Source: Amoebophrya sp. A120 (taxonomy: Eukaryota; Protista; Dinoflagellata). From it: a stretch of DNA of 64,000 nucleotides. This document shows, piece by piece, positions 3,501-54,608 of the stretch. The position numbers and the translations under genes were made by a program. Within the stretch, counting starts at the first letter, position 1. Every line of letters starts with the position of its first letter. The stretch spans positions 1,791,817 to 1,855,816 of the forward strand of contig CAJINV010000009.1 in the NCBI GenBank assembly GCA_905178155.1, written 5' to 3'. Under the pieces are notes generated by a model. That model had not been told where the DNA came from, searched no databases, and saw nothing but the letters and a program-made list of their open reading frames with translations.

Positions 3501-6500
3501 ACGACTCTTGCAGCGATTGCAAAAGCGCGAGGTGTGAGGAATGAGCCGCCGCAGTGGCGGCTGATGTCGGACCCTCGCTGTTTTTACTCGCACTCGCTCT
3601 GCTGGTTGTACCGGGTTTGCTCGCAAGCGTCGAGATGGTCGGTCCTGCGGGCCCTACTCGCGTGTGCGGGCCAGTCTTTTGATTGTAGGCATGATGCAAT
3701 GCCATTTGCGATCTCTGAACCTCCTCCGCCAATTGCTTGGCGATCGCACCGCGCTTGCTCGACAGGTTCGGCGCCACCTTTTGCAGCGTGGCGTCGATAT
3801 TTTGGTACCGATCGTTCAGGTGGAGAGCCAACTGCGCGAACTGCATGGTGTCGAACAACTTTGTTCCGGGACCAGTTTCCTCCACTCCAGACGAGGCAGC
3901 GGATGACACATTGGCGCCTGCGCCACTTCCTCCTGCTGCAACACGACTTCGACGGCACCCGAGCACCGTGCCCGCTACCGTGAAGCTCGCGAATCTCCGA
4001 CGGGCATCGCCGAAAAACTGGTCTAGCAAAACAGAGAGCTTCGACCGGTTCGAATCCCGTATGTGATGATCGGCTGAGGACGCCCCACTGCCCAAGACAC
4101 GGCGCTGCACCCCCGGTCCCGCTTTCAGCGGCGAAGCGAGGCTTTCGCGGTGCTGCTCCGATTCGGATTTGGGCGGGGCTGCGGACAGGAGGTCGACGAA
4201 CTGCTGCTGCACGGAGTGCTGTAACTCGGCCTGCACGGCGTCGCTAGCGGGGTTCGTGAGCGGGGCGAGCTCCACCACCGCAAGTTGCGCAGCTAGATTC
4301 CCGGGGAGGTTCCAATGATCGATCAGGTACACGCGGGCGACCGGGCGCTTGTAGAATGGTGCAGCCTCTTCCACTTCGTGAGCACCGGAAAGATGACTGA
4401 TGGTGTTGTACGTGTTTTGGAGGTATTAGTATTGACGAGCAGATTGGAGCCATATTTCTTTACGTAGCAATGATGTTGACGTAGCGCAGACGTAGCTCAT
4501 CATGAACTATCCACAGCACGACCGCCGAAAAATCTTCCGTCGACAGGCCTTCACTTTTTCAAAAAGTCGCAGTCGCACGAGAAGCAAGGCATTTAAAAAA
4601 GTTACCTCCCATACAGTCCCTGCTTGAAGACTGCGAAGTCGAGCAGATTTGAGAAGTCGTTGGGGTTTCGGGCTTGAATTTTGCTGACATTCCGCACGTG
4701 AATGGGCAGGTCAGGGTGTTCCACAAGTTGGAAGGGCTGGTAATCCTCGGAAAAGTCCTTCACGTTCAGCAGATCGCGAATCACGTCCTCTTCCAGTACC
4801 TCAAAAGCCTGCAGGGCCACGTGGGGCGCATGCTTGACTTCGCTCGGAGCGGAACCTCCTACTTCGGACACGACCCGACTAGAGCCTCCACGGGATGATC
4901 CTCGATCCTGCTTGTTTGCAATGCCGGCGTCGCCCCCGTCGGCAACCGTGTTCGCCAAAGAGCAGCTTCTGGCCACCATTTCCGCGAAGCGCTTCTTGAA
5001 GTCGCCGTAAAAGACCACCGCAGTGTTGATGCCTTGGGATAAAAGTGATCTGATCTGGTCGATGTCCGCCACCCCCTGGAGCAGACGCGCGGTCTGCAGA
5101 CCCCTTTCGTCCTGCGTGCTCGGTGCCGTTGTACCGGCTGATGGAAAGAAAGCAGAGGAGGAGGTCGCGGCAGAGTCACCCACGAGGAGTCGACCCACAG
5201 CTGCTGAAGAAGACGCAGTGTTTGTGTGATCAGCCTCATCTGAAGTGCTCGCTGCTTTAGTACTCCGCGTCGAGGACCCTACGGTGCCTCCTGCGCTAGT
5301 GCCGCCCCGTCCGGACCCGGCGACCATGCGCACTTTTACATCAGCAAAGGGGCCGAAAGTTCGTCTTCTCGCACCGCCCAGCGACACCATCTTGTTGCCT
5401 GAGTGCGTTTCCACGCCGAACTTAGAAACCGGTATAGCAGCGTCGTCGCGGTCAATAAGAACGCGGACGTCGCAGTAGCTCCTCGCTTGTTCGCTTATGG
5501 ACCGGGAATTCAATGTTTTTAGAAACGGTCGCTCGTCCAATTCCCAATCGGGCGCCATCATTTCAGTATCTCCGGATGGCCATGCCTGCACGGCTGAGCT
5601 GCCGTCTATATCTCTAGTACCGTCATCGAACCCAGCTTCACTTCTGGCTCCAAGTCCAGACGTACCAGACAGCATGCTCGCCAGTGAGTAGTCCTGGTCG
5701 TTTTTTTGAAATTTGGAAAACTTTGGCAGCTCGTGGTTGGACGGCTTTCGGCCAATGTGGTGTCTCCGGTCGTCCTCCAAGTTGGCCTGCTTCAGCACGA
5801 AGTCGTTGTACTTCTTGATATTTTCCTGGTGCTTTTTCAGAGGGACGCCAGTAATGGACCTGGTTACCGTTGTGCCGATGTGGTTCAAGTCAGACCGCAA
5901 GTTCACGAGTAACGACTGGCCGTTATCGGCGGTGTCGCGAAACACGTTCTGCTCTTCCTGTAGCCGCTTCAACTGCGAAAACGATTTTTGCCGGCTGGAG
6001 TACTGCTTGCGCTTCGCGAACGTCGACGCGGACATGTCGGACTGCTTCGACTTCAGGCTGAAACTGGTCGAGAACGCTGCTACGGAGCTCGAACAACTGC
6101 TGTCATTGTCCTGTTCGGTCACTTCTATTTCTCGCTCGGAGGTAGTCTGCTGATTCGACTGCTGGTCCACAAGCGCACCACCATCTTCGCCTGTTCTCCC
6201 ACCAGGGGGAATTCTAGTGCTTCGAAGCTTGCTCGTACGGCTGGCGGTGTATTTGTTGGCGATTTTCACTTCCAGATCTTTCGGCGCAGCGGGGGGACCT
6301 TCGATCAACGTCTCCTCGGTTTTTAGCGGACGCCATTCCTTTATGCTGGGAATCTTGTCAAGAAGCTTGTGTGGACTCGAAGTTCTGGCCGAGGCGGTGT
6401 TTATTTTCTGGGGGCTTCGCAAAGTCGCCTCCGGCGTCAGGATGCCCGTCGATCCCCGAGCTTCTGGAGTCGATGCACCGGGCGCTGTGGTGGTCCTGCG

Positions 6501-49035: not shown

Positions 49036-52000
49036 CTAGCTCAGATTCATTTCTAGTTTCGCTCTGTTCGGACGAGTACTTCGATTGAATGGTGTTCCAC
49101 TTACGCTTGCTGCTGCATTTACTGCGTTAGCATTACTGTTCTTTGTTCGCGCTTCCTTTGCTGGTCCTTTTGCAGGACGATCAGCAGCAGGGCGCTCATT
49201 CGACACAGAAGTACTCGCACTTGATGATTCTTGTGCCTTCACGTTGAAGTGCCTTCGAATTTCGTTTCGCAGAACATCTCTCTGAGAGGGACCTGGTGGC
49301 TCGTCCGCTGTGCGAGCAGAAGACGACTGCGACTTCTCCTTCCCGTTGACCTTCCTGCAGTGTGTTCCCTGCACCTTCGACGCTGCATCTTCCGGCCCCC
49401 CGAGCAGCCAGGCTTTTTGCCGCGGCGGTGGAGGGGGCTGCACATCCCACAAAATTTCGTTGCCGCGCAGCTTTGTGCATAAATCCCCTGCAGGAGCTCT
49501 CTGCTCTTTCTTTGTTCTCTCTCCACTTTCGGCCGAGTCCTTGTCTCTTCGCCACGCTTCGATTTTCACCTTCTGTTCTTGTCGCTTTCTCGCCTCCTCG
49601 CGTTTCCTCCTTTCACGGGCTTTTTCCTCCTCAGCCGCAATCTCCTCGTCGTACGCGGCCTCGGCCTCCAGCTGCTCGTCCCGTTCTTGGTAGAGCGCGT
49701 CAAGCTTTTTCCGCAGTTCCCGATGGTGCTGCTGTCGCTTGCGCTCCTTCGCTTCGCTTCTTTCAAATTCCAGCTTTTGCTCTTTCTATCCTCAGGAAAG
49801 AACCCATGATCCCCATTGTTCACTTGATTTTGCATGCCAAACACTGGATGTGGATGAGTTGATGCATGTTCTGCAAGCATGGCAAATCCAAATTGGATGG
49901 GGATGCTGAGTCTTTTTTTGTGGATACTTCCAACTTCTCCTCCATTCTTTTCACGTCCACCAGCAACCTGCTCTCTAGCGTAGCCAACCGCTCCACGTCC
50001 TGCCGCACATCTCGCATCACGCGCTGCCGCTGGTAGTGCAGGCCCAATTCATCGGCGCAAGAACTGTTATTTGCGGTTATGGTGTGAATCACCTCCCCAC
50101 GCATCACCTCCCCACCTCCCTACCTCCCCACCCTGGGGAGGTGCCTCCCCGCGTGTGGGGAGGTGCCTCCCCAGTAGTGGGGAGGTGGGGAGGTTCTTCC
50201 CCACCTCCCTGCCGTCCAACACTTCCCCACCACGTTGCACTTCCCCGCGATGGTCGACCAGAACGTGACTGCGTCTGGATGCTTGTTGCTTGGCTTCGTT
50301 CTGTGCCATCGATCTACCTCGCGGCCATGAAGCCAGCAGGTATCTGCCACAACGCACATGGGCCCTCATCCTGCATGACAGATGCGCCTATGTACGCGGC
50401 CACCAGATGTCGACCGGCGGCCCTAAGGTGGCGAGCATGGAACGACCTACGGGGCACGCAAAGCAATGCCGCAAGGAGTTAAGGCACGGAGGCACGCCGG
50501 GGGCAAAGGGCGCACAACATTCAGAAGGGCCAACGAGAAGGGGGCGCCAAAAGGGTGACACGCAAGAGCGGAGAAGGGACAGAGCACACGAGGAAGAGAG
50601 AATCGCCGAGGCCAGCCGGCGCGACGGCGCCGTCGCGCCGGCTGGCCTCGACGACCCTAAACCCCGAGCCCTAAACCCTAGACCTAAACAACCAAGGCCG
50701 CAGCCGGCTCTGCTTCTGCATCACCTCCGGCCGTTGCGGTGGTGATGCGGCCGCGTCACGAGGTGATGCGGGGGAGGTGGGTAGGTGATCCGGGTGGGGG
50801 GGTGATGCGTGGGGAGGTGATTCAAAGGGGTGGGGAGGTGATTCACACTCCTACCGTTATTTGCTGGCGGTGGCTCTAAGACGACGACCGGAGCTGCATC
50901 TTCTCGTCCAGTGCTCGTTGCTGTGCTGCTGGTGTTCCTTCTACCACTTGAGTTGTGAGCAGGCGGATGTACCGGAACATGATTTTTATGTGGCGCGGTG
51001 CAGCGCGCCCGCAAATCCTGATGCCACGCGGCCGTGGCGCCCGTGTCATCACGGAGGAACAGATCCGTGGCTCGAATGATTTTTCGCGCCGTGTGCTGGT
51101 GCCTCCGCTTTTGCCGGTCGAAAGCATGACCTCCACCAGTTGAGGTTATTGCTTCCATGAAAGCATTGATTACGGTATCCTCGGATTTCCTTTCTCCTCT
51201 CGTCCCGCGTGGCCCTCTGGTGTCGTAGGTGGAGCCTTCTTGGCTTCGACAGGTTCGGGCGGTACTCGTGTAACTTGAAGAATTCGCGCTTAAGCTACAA
51301 TTAGAAGCGCTACTGCTCGACGTTGGCGAGTAGAGCGATGAGCGGACGACCACAGCATCGTGTTGAGACTGCTGCACCACAAGCGATTCCGTTGGCTCTT
51401 GCGAGGAGTAGTTGCAACAAGACCTACTTGTAGGTGGACCACTGTCGTCGTAGTTCTGCTTGTAGTCCTGAGTATTCAATGACTTATGATGTGGCGCCGC
51501 TTTCTTCGCCGGCGGGAACGGCTGTGAACCGAAAGATAGAGATGCTGCACCGGACGAAGCTAATTGCTCCTGATTTTGCGCCGGTGCCTTTCGCTTTGCT
51601 TGTTCTCCTGAACGTGCAACTGGTCCCGCTGTGACCATGGCCTTTTTCGAGCTCGTGCTTGCGATGTGGCTTCTTGGCGGTTCTTGTCGGAGCAGTGGAC
51701 TTTCGTCCAAAAGAGTCGCTATCCGGTCTGCGAGGCTAGGGATCCTAGAAGCAGTTTCATTTTTCTGTCCCGCAATTTTGACGTGAGCATCTTCGTCACA
51801 TGCCGAAGACGAGCTACCAGCAGGATGCCGCACGCTCATTGTTCCTTTGCCGTCATGATCCCTGGGCGAGATCGAACTGCAGTTCATGATCCCTTCGTCG
51901 CGCAGCTGAACAACGTCCGTATTGGTGGCTCTGGAGGCTGAAGCGTTTTTCACACCTTCGCAGGTCCTCCCCAGAGTTCCCGCCATCGAAGAAACCGAAG

Positions 52001-54608
52001 CACTCACGTTGTTCCCCGCCATGTTTTTTGTTGAGGAGAGTTGTAAGATCTTCGGCAGTAACCCTTTCGGCAGCAGAATGTGGTGTTCGCGGAGCGCCCG
52101 CGCGCGGAACGAGCGCTCGAATTCTCGCTCAAATTGGAGTCGCGCCTCCTGCGGCACCAAAGCGCAGAGCGATTGGCTGCTGCTGCGGGCAGATTTCATA
52201 GAAACAGAAAAATGCTCGCTTTCGTCCTCTGCACTGTGTGTCGCTGTTCCTCGTGGCGTGCGCGGCCTTCTCACACCTCGTCCGTTACACTGTCGTCCCA
52301 AGAGAAAATCGATCTTGTGCAGCACTTCTGCCTTCGCCCTATTCTCGTACGCTTGAGACAGTTGGGGGTAGTTGTTCCGAAGCGCGTCCGCGCTTCCTGC
52401 TGAGGGGGTTTCGGCGGCCCGAAGCAGTTCCAGGTGTTCGTCAAAGATGCGATTTCCTCGTAACCACGGCGCTGCTGCTTCGAAAGTTTTCTTTCGTTCC
52501 GCCGCGGACATCATGACCGATGTTGCAGCCGCTGCTGTCTCGTCGCCAACGATAATATTAGCAGCATCAGTGCTGGACCTGCACGTGGCCCAAAGACCAG
52601 CAGCAGGATCATTCACAGGATCCGCATCCCTGTTGTGGGTCGTTTCTCCCTCTGGTCCAGAGCGCCTTCCAGCACGCATAGCTCGATCCCGCAGTCTCGT
52701 TGTGGAAATGCAGGAGCGCTGAAACCGGTAGGCTCCGTGTCGCTTTCCCGGAGGAGAACCAATTCTGCTAGAAGATAGCTGTTGAAGAAATCGTGACCGC
52801 GACGAAAACGAAACTGACCTGTTCTGAACTTTTTGCGTTAGTACGGCAGCGCCACGCTGCTGGTACTGATGCTTTGTTGATCCTGATTCCGTTGTAGCAG
52901 CCACAATTTCATCATCCCGAACAGCAAGGGAGCACGAGTCGGGCTTGCTGCCGGCTTTGTTTACCTGATTCTGCAGCTCGACCACGTCTCCAGGAGCTCC
53001 TCCACAGAATCGAGATCCACCGCCTTCTTCTGCACATGATGGTCGCTCTTCCTCATCTTCTTTGTGCAAACAAGCAGCCACGACGTCCTGTCTCGGCTCT
53101 GCTACTTCTACTCCACCGGCTGCTGGTGGATGATCAGATGCTAACGCTTCTACGTGTTCTCGCTCTTCTTCTTCAGTGTTGCCATCTGAAGTTGTTTTCG
53201 CATCTTGTCCTTCATCAGCTTCACCTTTTGCTTCGTTGAGTGCGGCCGCGTCGAGGTCGTTTTCTTTCTCTGCCGCAGCTGCAGTGCGCGCTCGATTTCT
53301 GGCTGCTGCCTCCATCACGACAGAAAAGAAATCCTGGCGAGCTGGCGGCGGGAATGCTGTGTGCAAAGGCAACGCAGAAACGGTTATTTTCTCAACATGA
53401 TCCTTATCCGCGTTGTTTTCTAGCGAATCAGCGATCGCCTTTTCCTCTTCGAGTTTCTTTTTCGCAGCCACAACTTTCCCGATCTCCTGTTGCAGTAGTC
53501 GTTGCGAATGGTTTGTGGATGAGCGCAGCCGAGGTTCGTCGGTTTCATCTTCGGAAATAGCTAGTATGCTGCGAGCATTCGTTCCAGGAGGTGCTGGATC
53601 ATCTGCCAGATTTTTGTTCCTTTCAATTTCCCGGGCTTCGGCAAACCTTGTGCTTTTGCTTTCTAGACTCGAAAGCCACTCTTCGCGTTCGGCTTGCGTC
53701 GTGTAGAAGAGAACGTCGACTTCATTTTGCGGCAAAGCGAGGTAATCAAAGCCGCCATCCTTGGTCTCGCCGGCCGCCGTGTCCTCGAATGCCGTCCAAA
53801 ACTTGTGGGCCTCCTCGCAGAATGGGAACTGCCTTTCCAATGCTGCTGGCGCTAGCACACCTCCTACAACGCCAGGAGCTTGAGCTTGGCGCGACTGAGT
53901 CGCTTCGTCAGGAGCGGCAGCAGCAGTGAAGCCGGCAGTTTTGTCTTTGCTAGTCTGCGCAACATCGCCGTCCTCGCGATAGTTCTTGAGACGAGCGAGC
54001 ACCGCGTGAAACCGAGCATACGTTGTGGGGCGAGCTTTGTCGCTTACCTCTTGATGTTCTGGAGGAGATGAAATCGGTGCAGTTGGTGCGGTAGCTGACG
54101 CTGCAGGTGGAAACCCCGAACCCGAACCAGGTGCACCTGTTAGGACGTTGGTTCAGAATTTATTTGTGTCGCGGCGTAACTAAAGCCAAAATAAAGTTAG
54201 TAAAGGTCGAGCACCATTACAATTTCATTGACGGCTCGACGACGTCAGGCGGTTACTATTAAGTTTAAGACCCGATCCCAATGCTCATGCGCATCGTAGA
54301 TGATGAGGAGACGGCACAAAAATAACTGCAAGTAGATTGATACCCTGGGCGAAATGCTGTCCCCCGTCTGCCTCTACGAAGATTTTTGCAGCGTCCCCTG
54401 CAGTAGTTCCCCGGCTCAACAGTGAAAGCTTTTTGCTTTTTGCCTGCGCGGAAATCTGATTATGGACTCGACGCTGGAGTAGGCTGGAAACTTCCTGGAC
54501 GAATGTAGGTTCGTCGCGCAGCTCGGCGGTAAACAGACAGCGTAGCGCGGACCACGAAGGCAGGTCCGAAGAAGAAGTAGAAAACTCCTGGGATGAAGGT
54601 GCTGCCAT
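49036..54608 (-). CDS. Large low-complexity protein with C-terminal charged coiled coil; exons 54608-54344, 54136-50856, 50065-49927, 49781-49036
   Basis: One canonical intron (54137-54343, GTATCA...CTAACAG) and two TIR/TSD inserts. All joins preserve frame (PPANN|SSCADEL; EEKLE|EQKLEFER...QKVKIEAW). Confidence 0.75.
49787..49926 (-). mobile_element. TAT-family introner, 140 bp, TSD GGAAG/GAAAG
   Basis: Termini TATCC...GGATA. Contains CATCCCCATCCAATTTG as in the 37861 element and TTTGGCATGCAAAA. The join is in frame. Confidence 0.88.
50075..50855. mobile_element. Non-autonomous Mutator-like (MULE/MITE) element acting as an intron: 781 bp, 26-bp TIR, perfect 9-bp TSD GCAAATAAC
   Basis: GTTATTTGC at 50066-50074 and 50856-50864. 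TIR GGT(TATG/AGGA)GTGTGAATCACCTCCCCAC with subterminal CACCTCCCC repeats. No transposase ORF. Confidence 0.9.
50655..50688. repeat. Interstitial telomere-like (CCCTAAA)n relic, five degenerate units
   Basis: CCCTAAA CCCCGAG CCCTAAA CCCTAGA CCTAAA. Confidence 0.5.

Follow-up and report, generated by a model that had tools for sequence, protein, structure and literature searches.

When a transposable element lies in the middle of a coding exon, a simple question has to be asked: is the gene broken, or does the element leave the transcript as an intron and, in the latter case, what determines where the transcript is cut? This question is raised by a 64,000-nt stretch of the genome of the dinoflagellate Amoebophrya sp. 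A120 (contig CAJINV010000009.1, positions 1,791,817-1,855,816, forward strand; hereafter, the window), where a non-coding element of 781 bp bearing terminal inverted repeats (TIRs) occupies positions 50075-50855, between two perfect 9-bp copies of GTTATTTGC (50066-50074 and 50856-50864; GCAAATAAC when read on the minus strand, which is the coding strand of the host gene). The initial annotation of this stretch considered the element to be a transposon-derived intron with non-canonical borders inside a coding exon, and the deposited gene models agree with that view. Here we argue that the element is very probably removed as an intron of exactly its own length, shifted by one base relative to the element, with the flanking 9-bp repeat left behind in the mRNA. 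The wider question is how most introns of Amoebophrya, which lack GT-AG borders, are removed, apparently in the absence of U1: more than 60% of the introns in A120 are non-canonical (Farhat et al. 2021, PMC7789003), and the repeats of the common elements hide the cut sites.

The junctions were read from the deposited A120 gene models at three copies of the element, namely, the window copy and the copies at loci L031 and L036, and the exon joins were scripted against the deposited proteins. These models were derived from transcript alignments because the non-canonical sites defeated ab initio tools (PMC7789003). At the window copy, the translation of the 1046-aa exon is 100% identical to the 1479-aa Amoebophrya sp. 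A120 "unnamed protein product" CAD7959984.1 (P0001), which reads ...PPPANN-ANN-SSCADE... (PPPANNANNSSC) across the insertion, so that both copies of the target-site duplication (TSD) are retained; a 781-nt intron can be placed here in three registers (CG..AC, GG..CC and GT..CG). Both TSD copies are likewise retained at L031 (G000:C1), where the protein CAD7926095.1 (P0005) reads ETDIS-DIS-ASTT. The third copy, L036 (G000:C4), with the TSD AACAAAATG, is the one that fixes the register. The genomic DNA has AAC AAA ATG on either side of the element, whereas the protein CAD7947801.1 (P0006), which has a single locus in the A120 genome, reads QKNKM-DKM-DEE, that is, NKM-DKM with a junction-specific N-to-D change. 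Exhaustive enumeration of the junctions at this copy yields a single solution, an element-length intron GTAGGAGT...CATAACCA, in which the first G of the element closes the upstream exon and the downstream exon begins at the second base of the TSD copy. This +1 register is the only one that is compatible with all three loci. For one more copy, L035, no annotated protein was found within the length range searched.

Thus, in these models, the transcript is cut on the 5' side between bases 1 and 2 of the element (G|GUAGGAG) and on the 3' side one position beyond the end of the element (...AUAACCN|), without an AG, N being G, G or A at the three copies. Intron and element are equally long, the former being shifted by +1, and the footprint is constant at the three loci: 9 nt, or three codons, in which the first base of the second TSD copy is replaced by the G of the element. 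In the window, the intron accordingly spans 50074-50854 on the minus strand (5' GUAGGAGU...CAUAACCG 3', borders GU..CG), as follows from the deposited gene model and the family-wide register. The preceding exon (50855-54136) closes with the first G of the element; the TSD copy that is upstream on the coding strand (50856-50864) stays in this exon and encodes A-N-N; and of the downstream copy (50066-50074), position 50074 is the last base of the intron, the other 8 nt being exonic. The next exon (49928-50073, minus strand) continues as ...CAAATAAC AGT TCT... and encodes a coiled-coil-like segment.

Because the TSD is 9 bp long, the removal of 790 nt would be in frame just as the removal of an element-length intron is. 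The initial annotation had proposed the former, that is, the TIRs and the direct repeat would enable the cell to excise the element along with one of the two TSD copies, restoring the original coding sequence. The claim that such an excision preserves the frame is correct, and the usual A120 introners (the repeated elements that constitute many introns of this organism) do lose one copy of their 3-5-nt repeat (PMC7789003), intron 3 of the very same host gene being an example. However, the deposited mRNA model does otherwise: the three annotated proteins keep both TSD copies, and no 790-nt register reproduces P0001. In line with the initial annotation, by which no frame-preserving register within the TSD ends in AG, our script found no GT-AG, GC-AG or AT-AC borders among the ten 790-nt registers that the duplication allows. 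Removal of a single TSD copy with the element appears extremely improbable; the direct repeat takes no part in the excision.

Could the deposited model, instead, be an artefact, with the gene disrupted in this strain and its transcripts either ending in the element or using cryptic GT-AG sites? The minus-strand open reading frame (ORF) of 1093 codons (50721-54002) does enter the element and stops 48 codons in, and there is a frame-preserving cryptic GT..AG pair that reaches 64 nt into the downstream TSD copy and exon and would define an intron of 844 nt. The pair G|GT...AACAG|, which might seem tempting, shifts the frame, as the initial annotation had it: when scripted, it removes 791 nt and brings in a stop after 15 codons. 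Yet the gene models derive from transcript alignments, and three unrelated loci show the element handled with equal precision, down to the junction-specific N-to-D change. Moreover, the copies of the element are old (84-95% identity), with the frames open on both sides at 8 loci; since the copies are 5-16% diverged and the host frames are still open, the element appears to be tolerated over the long term. The use of GT-AG sites, which had been named beforehand as the outcome that would speak for a disrupted allele, is not seen in the deposited models, the borders of which are GU..CG or GU..CA. Disruption of the gene is, therefore, very improbable, and we return to the reading of the element as an intron.

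What, then, is the entity that is being removed? On the minus strand, positions 50075-50855 carry a MITE-like (miniature inverted-repeat transposable element) non-autonomous TIR element: it has TIRs, a TSD of constant length, no coding capacity, and multiple copies in the genome that are 84-95% identical. The left TIR (50075-50100) is GGTTATGGTGTGAATCACCTCCCCAC, and the right TIR (50830-50855), as the reverse complement, is GGTAGGAGTGTGAATCACCTCCCCAC; the two agree at 22 of the 26 positions and share a perfect core of 19 nt. Hence the TIRs of 26 bp, starting with GGT, are present as annotated initially but are imperfect. The four mismatches (positions 4-7) are identical in all copies compared, so that the asymmetry belongs to the family. 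Inward of both TIRs there are subterminal GGGGAGGTG/CACCTCCCC repeat arrays, also in line with the first description. On the coding (minus) strand, the element begins with GGTAGGAGTGTGAATCACC and finishes with GGTGATTCACACCATAACC; the TIR at the 5' end of the intron (50830-50855) carries the 5' splice-site-like G|GTAGGAG in its asymmetric part, and the TIR at the 3' end (50075-50100) closes with ...CACCATAACC, without an AG. The interior contains a near-perfect palindrome of 52 nt (50603-50654), conserved in all copies and approximately 80% identical to that of a second family with 9-bp TSDs (see below), and, adjoining it, telomere-like repeats of the CCCTAAA type (50655-50689), which also occur in this related family. 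The ORFs inside the element (100-151 aa) gave no match in a Pfam search and the indels between its copies are not multiples of three; for these reasons, we consider it non-coding, as had been suggested. An Rfam scan of 49900-51000 gave only sub-threshold, generic microRNA-like hairpins, all far below the gathering scores. The element has no sequence match elsewhere in the window and is, therefore, unrelated to any other element there, as the initial annotation had said with respect to the other introner.

To follow the family, we searched the A120 assembly (labelled G000; 115.5 Mb in 401 contigs), which contains approximately 9 full-length copies with 84-95% identity, plus deleted and truncated ones. 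Besides the window, the family is represented within G000 C1:9151341-9152134, C1:886616-888247, C2:9903575-9904379, C5:7191732-7192494, C4:10058020-10058776, C4:7068435-7069194 and C6:1672887-1673601. The 9-bp TSDs of the full copies include TGAAATATC, GGAATTTGT, AGATT[C/G]GGC, T[G/T]TTTTTGG, CATTTTGTT and TTGTGCTTC, and the older, internally deleted copies are likewise flanked by 9-bp direct repeats. Given that a perfect 9-mer would match by chance at a rate of about 4e-6 per site and that a different 9-bp repeat flanks every full copy, the 9-bp duplication is a true TSD and not a chance repeat. When public metagenome contigs were scanned for the TIR core, two more copies emerged (on JACKZZ010011508.1 and JACKZZ010024323.1). 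The flanks of the former are 94% identical to G000:C5:3462950-3465268, and in A120 this site is empty: at G000:C5:3463896-3463924, the sequence is GTGCAGATC-AAACAGAGC-AGTCAACGACC, with a single 9-mer, whereas the filled site on the related contig is AAACAGAGC-element-GAACAGAGC. This pair of filled and empty sites directly demonstrates insertion with a 9-bp duplication, inside an open frame.

Three features of this orthologous region can be mentioned in their own right. At the filled site of the related lineage (L040:5712-5720 and 6449-6457), the downstream TSD copy begins with G, the upstream copy and the empty site with A; under the deduced register, this G is the last base of the intron, as a G also is in two of the three A120 copies for which there is an annotated protein, which may be chance. 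About 60 nt from the empty site, A120 has approximately 135 nt (G000:C5:3463973-3464107) that are absent from the 94%-identical JACKZZ contig (L040, around 5655-5660) and are probably a small A120-only introner. Finally, a repeat of about 255 bp on the JACKZZ contig (L040:7400-7660) matches more than 30 places in A120 with 95-97% identity and is a young, high-copy family common to both lineages.

The initial annotation assigned the element to the Mutator-like elements (MULEs). Both Mutator/MULE and Merlin DNA transposons have TIRs starting with G and a 9-bp TSD. The element shares both features with them, although the likeness was tested for TSD length only: 9 bp falls within the range of Mutator/MULE (8-11 bp) and fits Merlin (8-9 bp) as well. 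The MURA-type domains PF10551, PF00872 and PF03108 had no match in the 115.5-Mb A120 assembly, where absence is not proof, and the result for PF03108 carries little weight, as control genomes also gave no match; the Merlin (IS1595/IS1016-type) transposase domain PF12762 had no match in the A120 genome either. In a search for a longer, autonomous copy in A120, all paired TIR cores were 0.6-0.8 kb apart, and the unpaired cores belonged to truncated or internally deleted copies. Thus, the 9-bp TSD agrees with the proposed assignment, but the A120 genome, unlike what would be expected for the Mutator/MULE or Merlin groups, has neither a detectable transposase domain nor a long copy bearing the ends of the element. 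"Mutator-like" describes the TSD length and nothing else, and the element is not filed as a MULE. The genome-wide TIR search that had been recommended did reveal the copies, 8 of the approximately 9 full ones in open frames, but not the transposase-bearing parent.

The latter result also bears on the possibility that the element is lost at the level of DNA, the transcripts coming from nuclei in which a transposase had cut it out, leaving a footprint with both TSD copies. Cut-and-paste excision typically leaves both TSD copies together with 1-2 bases of the element, exactly as in the mRNA models. Still, end-joining repair is not regular enough to leave one and the same one-base footprint at three loci, the elements are present in the assembly, the search of the genome for MULE and Merlin domains turned up no transposase (PMC7789003 likewise reports none in A120), and RNA data from A120 document similar introns by the tens of thousands (PMC7789003). 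It seems hardly credible that the footprint arises in this way, which leaves removal from the RNA as our preferred explanation.

If the element is removed from the RNA, does its orientation matter? After removal of the element, open frames of 180-1183 aa span the insertion point in 8 of the 9 independent full A120 copies, and each of these 8, read on the coding strand, carries GGTAGGAG at the 5' side of the intron and CACCATAACC at the 3' side. The JACKZZ copy of the related lineage conforms to this as well. When only the copies in frames of at least 379 aa are counted, 7 of 7 have the same orientation (two-sided chance, ~0.016). Folding of the RNA, in the meantime, is similar in the two orientations (-433 and -439 kcal/mol; z = -10 and -13), the fold with -433 kcal/mol (z = -10) bringing the ends of the element together. 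Equal folding combined with a strict orientation bias indicates that a symmetric hairpin alone cannot explain the removal. The proposal of the initial annotation that excision is generic for any structure made of TIRs and a direct repeat fails on the same grounds. What distinguishes the two ends is the asymmetric segment of the TIR: the GUAGGAG end, in place of which the other TIR has GUUAUGG, resembles canonical 5' sites of this genome, such as GTAAGC and GTATCA.

In our view, the best explanation is the following. A non-autonomous cut-and-paste DNA transposon inserted in the sense orientation into a coding exon. In the transcript, the TIR helix would juxtapose the two cut sites, as in the published model in which the inverted repeats of A120 introners form a hairpin joining the exon ends (PMC7789003); GUAGGAG, located in the asymmetric part of one TIR, would act as the 5' splice site; and the spliceosome of A120 would tolerate non-AG 3' ends, with the 3' cut fixed one base beyond the element (...CACCAUAACCN|, N = A or G), whatever that base. 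With both cut sites set by the element itself, both TSD copies remain in the mRNA, which leaves an in-frame footprint of three codons. We favour, with moderate confidence, a spliceosomal removal of this kind.

Several points weigh against this interpretation. The junctions come from deposited gene models, with three copies checked, and the register rests on one of these, L036, the model of which is marked partial. The location in long frames is not strongly enriched, given that approximately 35% of the window positions are in open frames of at least 400 aa, and four more diverged or deleted copies lie outside long open frames. As for the mechanism, a GU..CN intron with no polypyrimidine tract and no AG has no precedent for the standard spliceosome, and the U1 small nuclear RNA was not found in A120 (PMC7789003).

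The last two points would be accommodated if the removal were not spliceosomal at all, that is, if a structure-guided endonuclease cut the base of the TIR helix and a ligase joined the exons, in the manner of transfer RNA, of HAC1/XBP1 or of the type proposed for euglenids. The very stable fold and the variable last base of the intron, A or G, would suit such a pathway, and pairing of G1 with C781 and of G2 with C780 would leave a 2-nt 3' overhang on the excised hairpin. However, the orientation bias is strict although the two strands fold with equal stability, the 5' end resembles the canonical 5' sites of the genome (GTAAG, GTATC), the cuts are at the very edge of the helix, unlike those of known RNase III enzymes, and nearly all spliceosomal proteins are present in A120 (PMC7789003). 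Because of the orientation bias and the position of the cuts at the very helix edge, we rate this route low and consider it unlikely. A related reading, in which the cut sites are measured from the terminal helix (after base 1 and one past the last base) and not read from splice-site sequence, strikes us as rather doubtful; if true, it would point to a structure-guided, possibly non-spliceosomal pathway behind the non-canonical introns that Amoebophrya has in the thousands, and the 9-bp TSD would make any such element frame-neutral. Spliceosomal removal guided by the two ends of the element remains our favoured reading.

The host gene is entirely on the minus strand. Exon 1 (54344-54608) is followed by an intron of 207 nt that can be read as GT..AG; exons 2 and 3 are those described above; and exon 4 (49036-49782) includes the stop codon. 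No domain was identified in a Pfam search of all exons. Intron 3 (49783-49927, minus strand, 145 nt) is a typical A120 element with the ends TATCC...GGATA; its flanking repeat is an imperfect one of 5 nt (GGAAG/GAAAG), one copy of which leaves with the intron, and its borders are ambiguous among four registers (TA..AG, GT..AA, AG..AA and AA..GA). One may entertain the idea, drawn from the sequences of these two families only, that |GUAGGAG...AUA-ACCN| and intron 3 as |GUAUCC...AUA-GAAA| (one of its four registers) could both fit the pattern |GUA ... AUA N4|.

Genomic surroundings of other copies also deserve mention. At L032:5007-6624 (G000:C1:886616-888247), the element occurs twice, approximately 973 bp apart, with one and the same TSD (GGAATTTGT) and nearly the same flanks, which looks like a tandem segmental duplication of a piece of exon together with the introner; the second copy has an internal deletion of about 145 bp. 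Directly downstream of the P0005 gene, the coding strand of L031 (6969-8675) translates to a 27%-identical relative of P0005 and is a diverged tandem paralogue of that gene. The related family with 9-bp TSDs (ACAAAAGCC, TAGATCTGT) is 629 bp long and occurs at L028:1422-2050 (G000:C12, near 1501700-1502330) and also at L029 and L030. Its TIRs are GGACGTAAGCCGGATCATCCCCC and the reverse complement of GGACATCGGCAGGATCATCCCCCC, and it has subterminal GATCACCCCCCTCAAG repeats, telomere-like repeats and a perfect palindrome of 52 nt that is approximately 80% identical to window 50603-50654. Open frames, of 534 and 262 aa, surround two of its three copies, and it is the end bearing GTAAG, GGAC|GTAAGCC, that lies on the 5' side.

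The significance of the element is mechanistic: its cut sites can be read to the base (G|GU...CCN|), because this low-copy family keeps its 9-bp repeat in the exons. The determinable borders, the retention of the TSD, the strict sense orientation and the natural pair of filled and empty sites make it a clean substrate for minigene and branch-mapping work. Furthermore, when the TSD length is a multiple of three, an element that brings both of its own cut sites can reside in exons for the price of three codons.

How does the element compare with other introns of transposon origin? As summarised in PMC11282704, the MITE-derived introns of Fritillaria borealis and the nonconventional introns of euglenids share with it non-GT-AG borders, end-to-end pairing and a suspected transposon origin; they differ in the border dinucleotides (AG-AC/AG-AT in Fritillaria, a pyrimidine|purine consensus in euglenids) and in the short TSD-like repeats at their borders, and they are not related to the element in sequence. 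The introners of Micromonas and Aureococcus (Huff, Zilberman & Roy 2016), as summarised in the same source, are also non-autonomous transposons with TIRs and a TSD that become introns on insertion and carry a 5' site, but, according to this summary, they take the second splice site from the TSD, restoring the original mRNA, whereas our element makes no use of its TSD. As regards TSD retention, the nearest precedent is the Aureococcus introner of Gozashti et al. 2022 (PMC9860276, Fig. 2F), where, likewise, the element supplies both cut sites, the TSD stays and the insertion is in frame. That introner lengthens the mRNA by 12 nt, of which the element provides 4 and the TSD 8, as compared to 9 nt here (1 and 8, counted beyond the first TSD copy), and the Aureococcus introners use canonical splice sites, in contrast to the 3' end CG or CA of our element.

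The nearest relatives, by organism and by character, are the introners of A120 itself, which are repeated elements with inverted repeats of 8-20 nt and direct repeats of 3-5 nt that overlap the intron borders (PMC7789003) and which derive from non-LTR (long terminal repeat), LTR and diverse TIR DNA transposons (Gozashti et al. 2025, PMC12130899). Hence, that unrelated transposons serve as introns in A120 is already published (PMC7789003, PMC12130899). With the introners of Farhat et al. (PMC7789003) the element shares the organism, the repeated, non-coding, TIR-bearing and non-canonical nature of the intron, the transcript support and the hairpin; it has non-GT-AG borders (GU..CG or GU..CA), inverted repeats at its ends and a genomic family, three copies of which are annotated introns. 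It differs in that its border repeat is not one of 3-5 nt with one copy lost but one of 9 nt with both copies kept, bar one base; in that the published inverted repeats start with TAT and its TIR with GGT; in that the published borders are indeterminable owing to the overlapping repeats, whereas its borders are determinable (GU..CN); and in that non-canonical introns average 240 nt, the element being far longer at 781 nt. By the broad definition of Gozashti and Roy, it is an introner, with similar introns in three unrelated annotated genes and filled and empty orthologous sites. Taken together, these comparisons identify the element as a new, well-resolved member of the known introner phenomenon of Amoebophrya.

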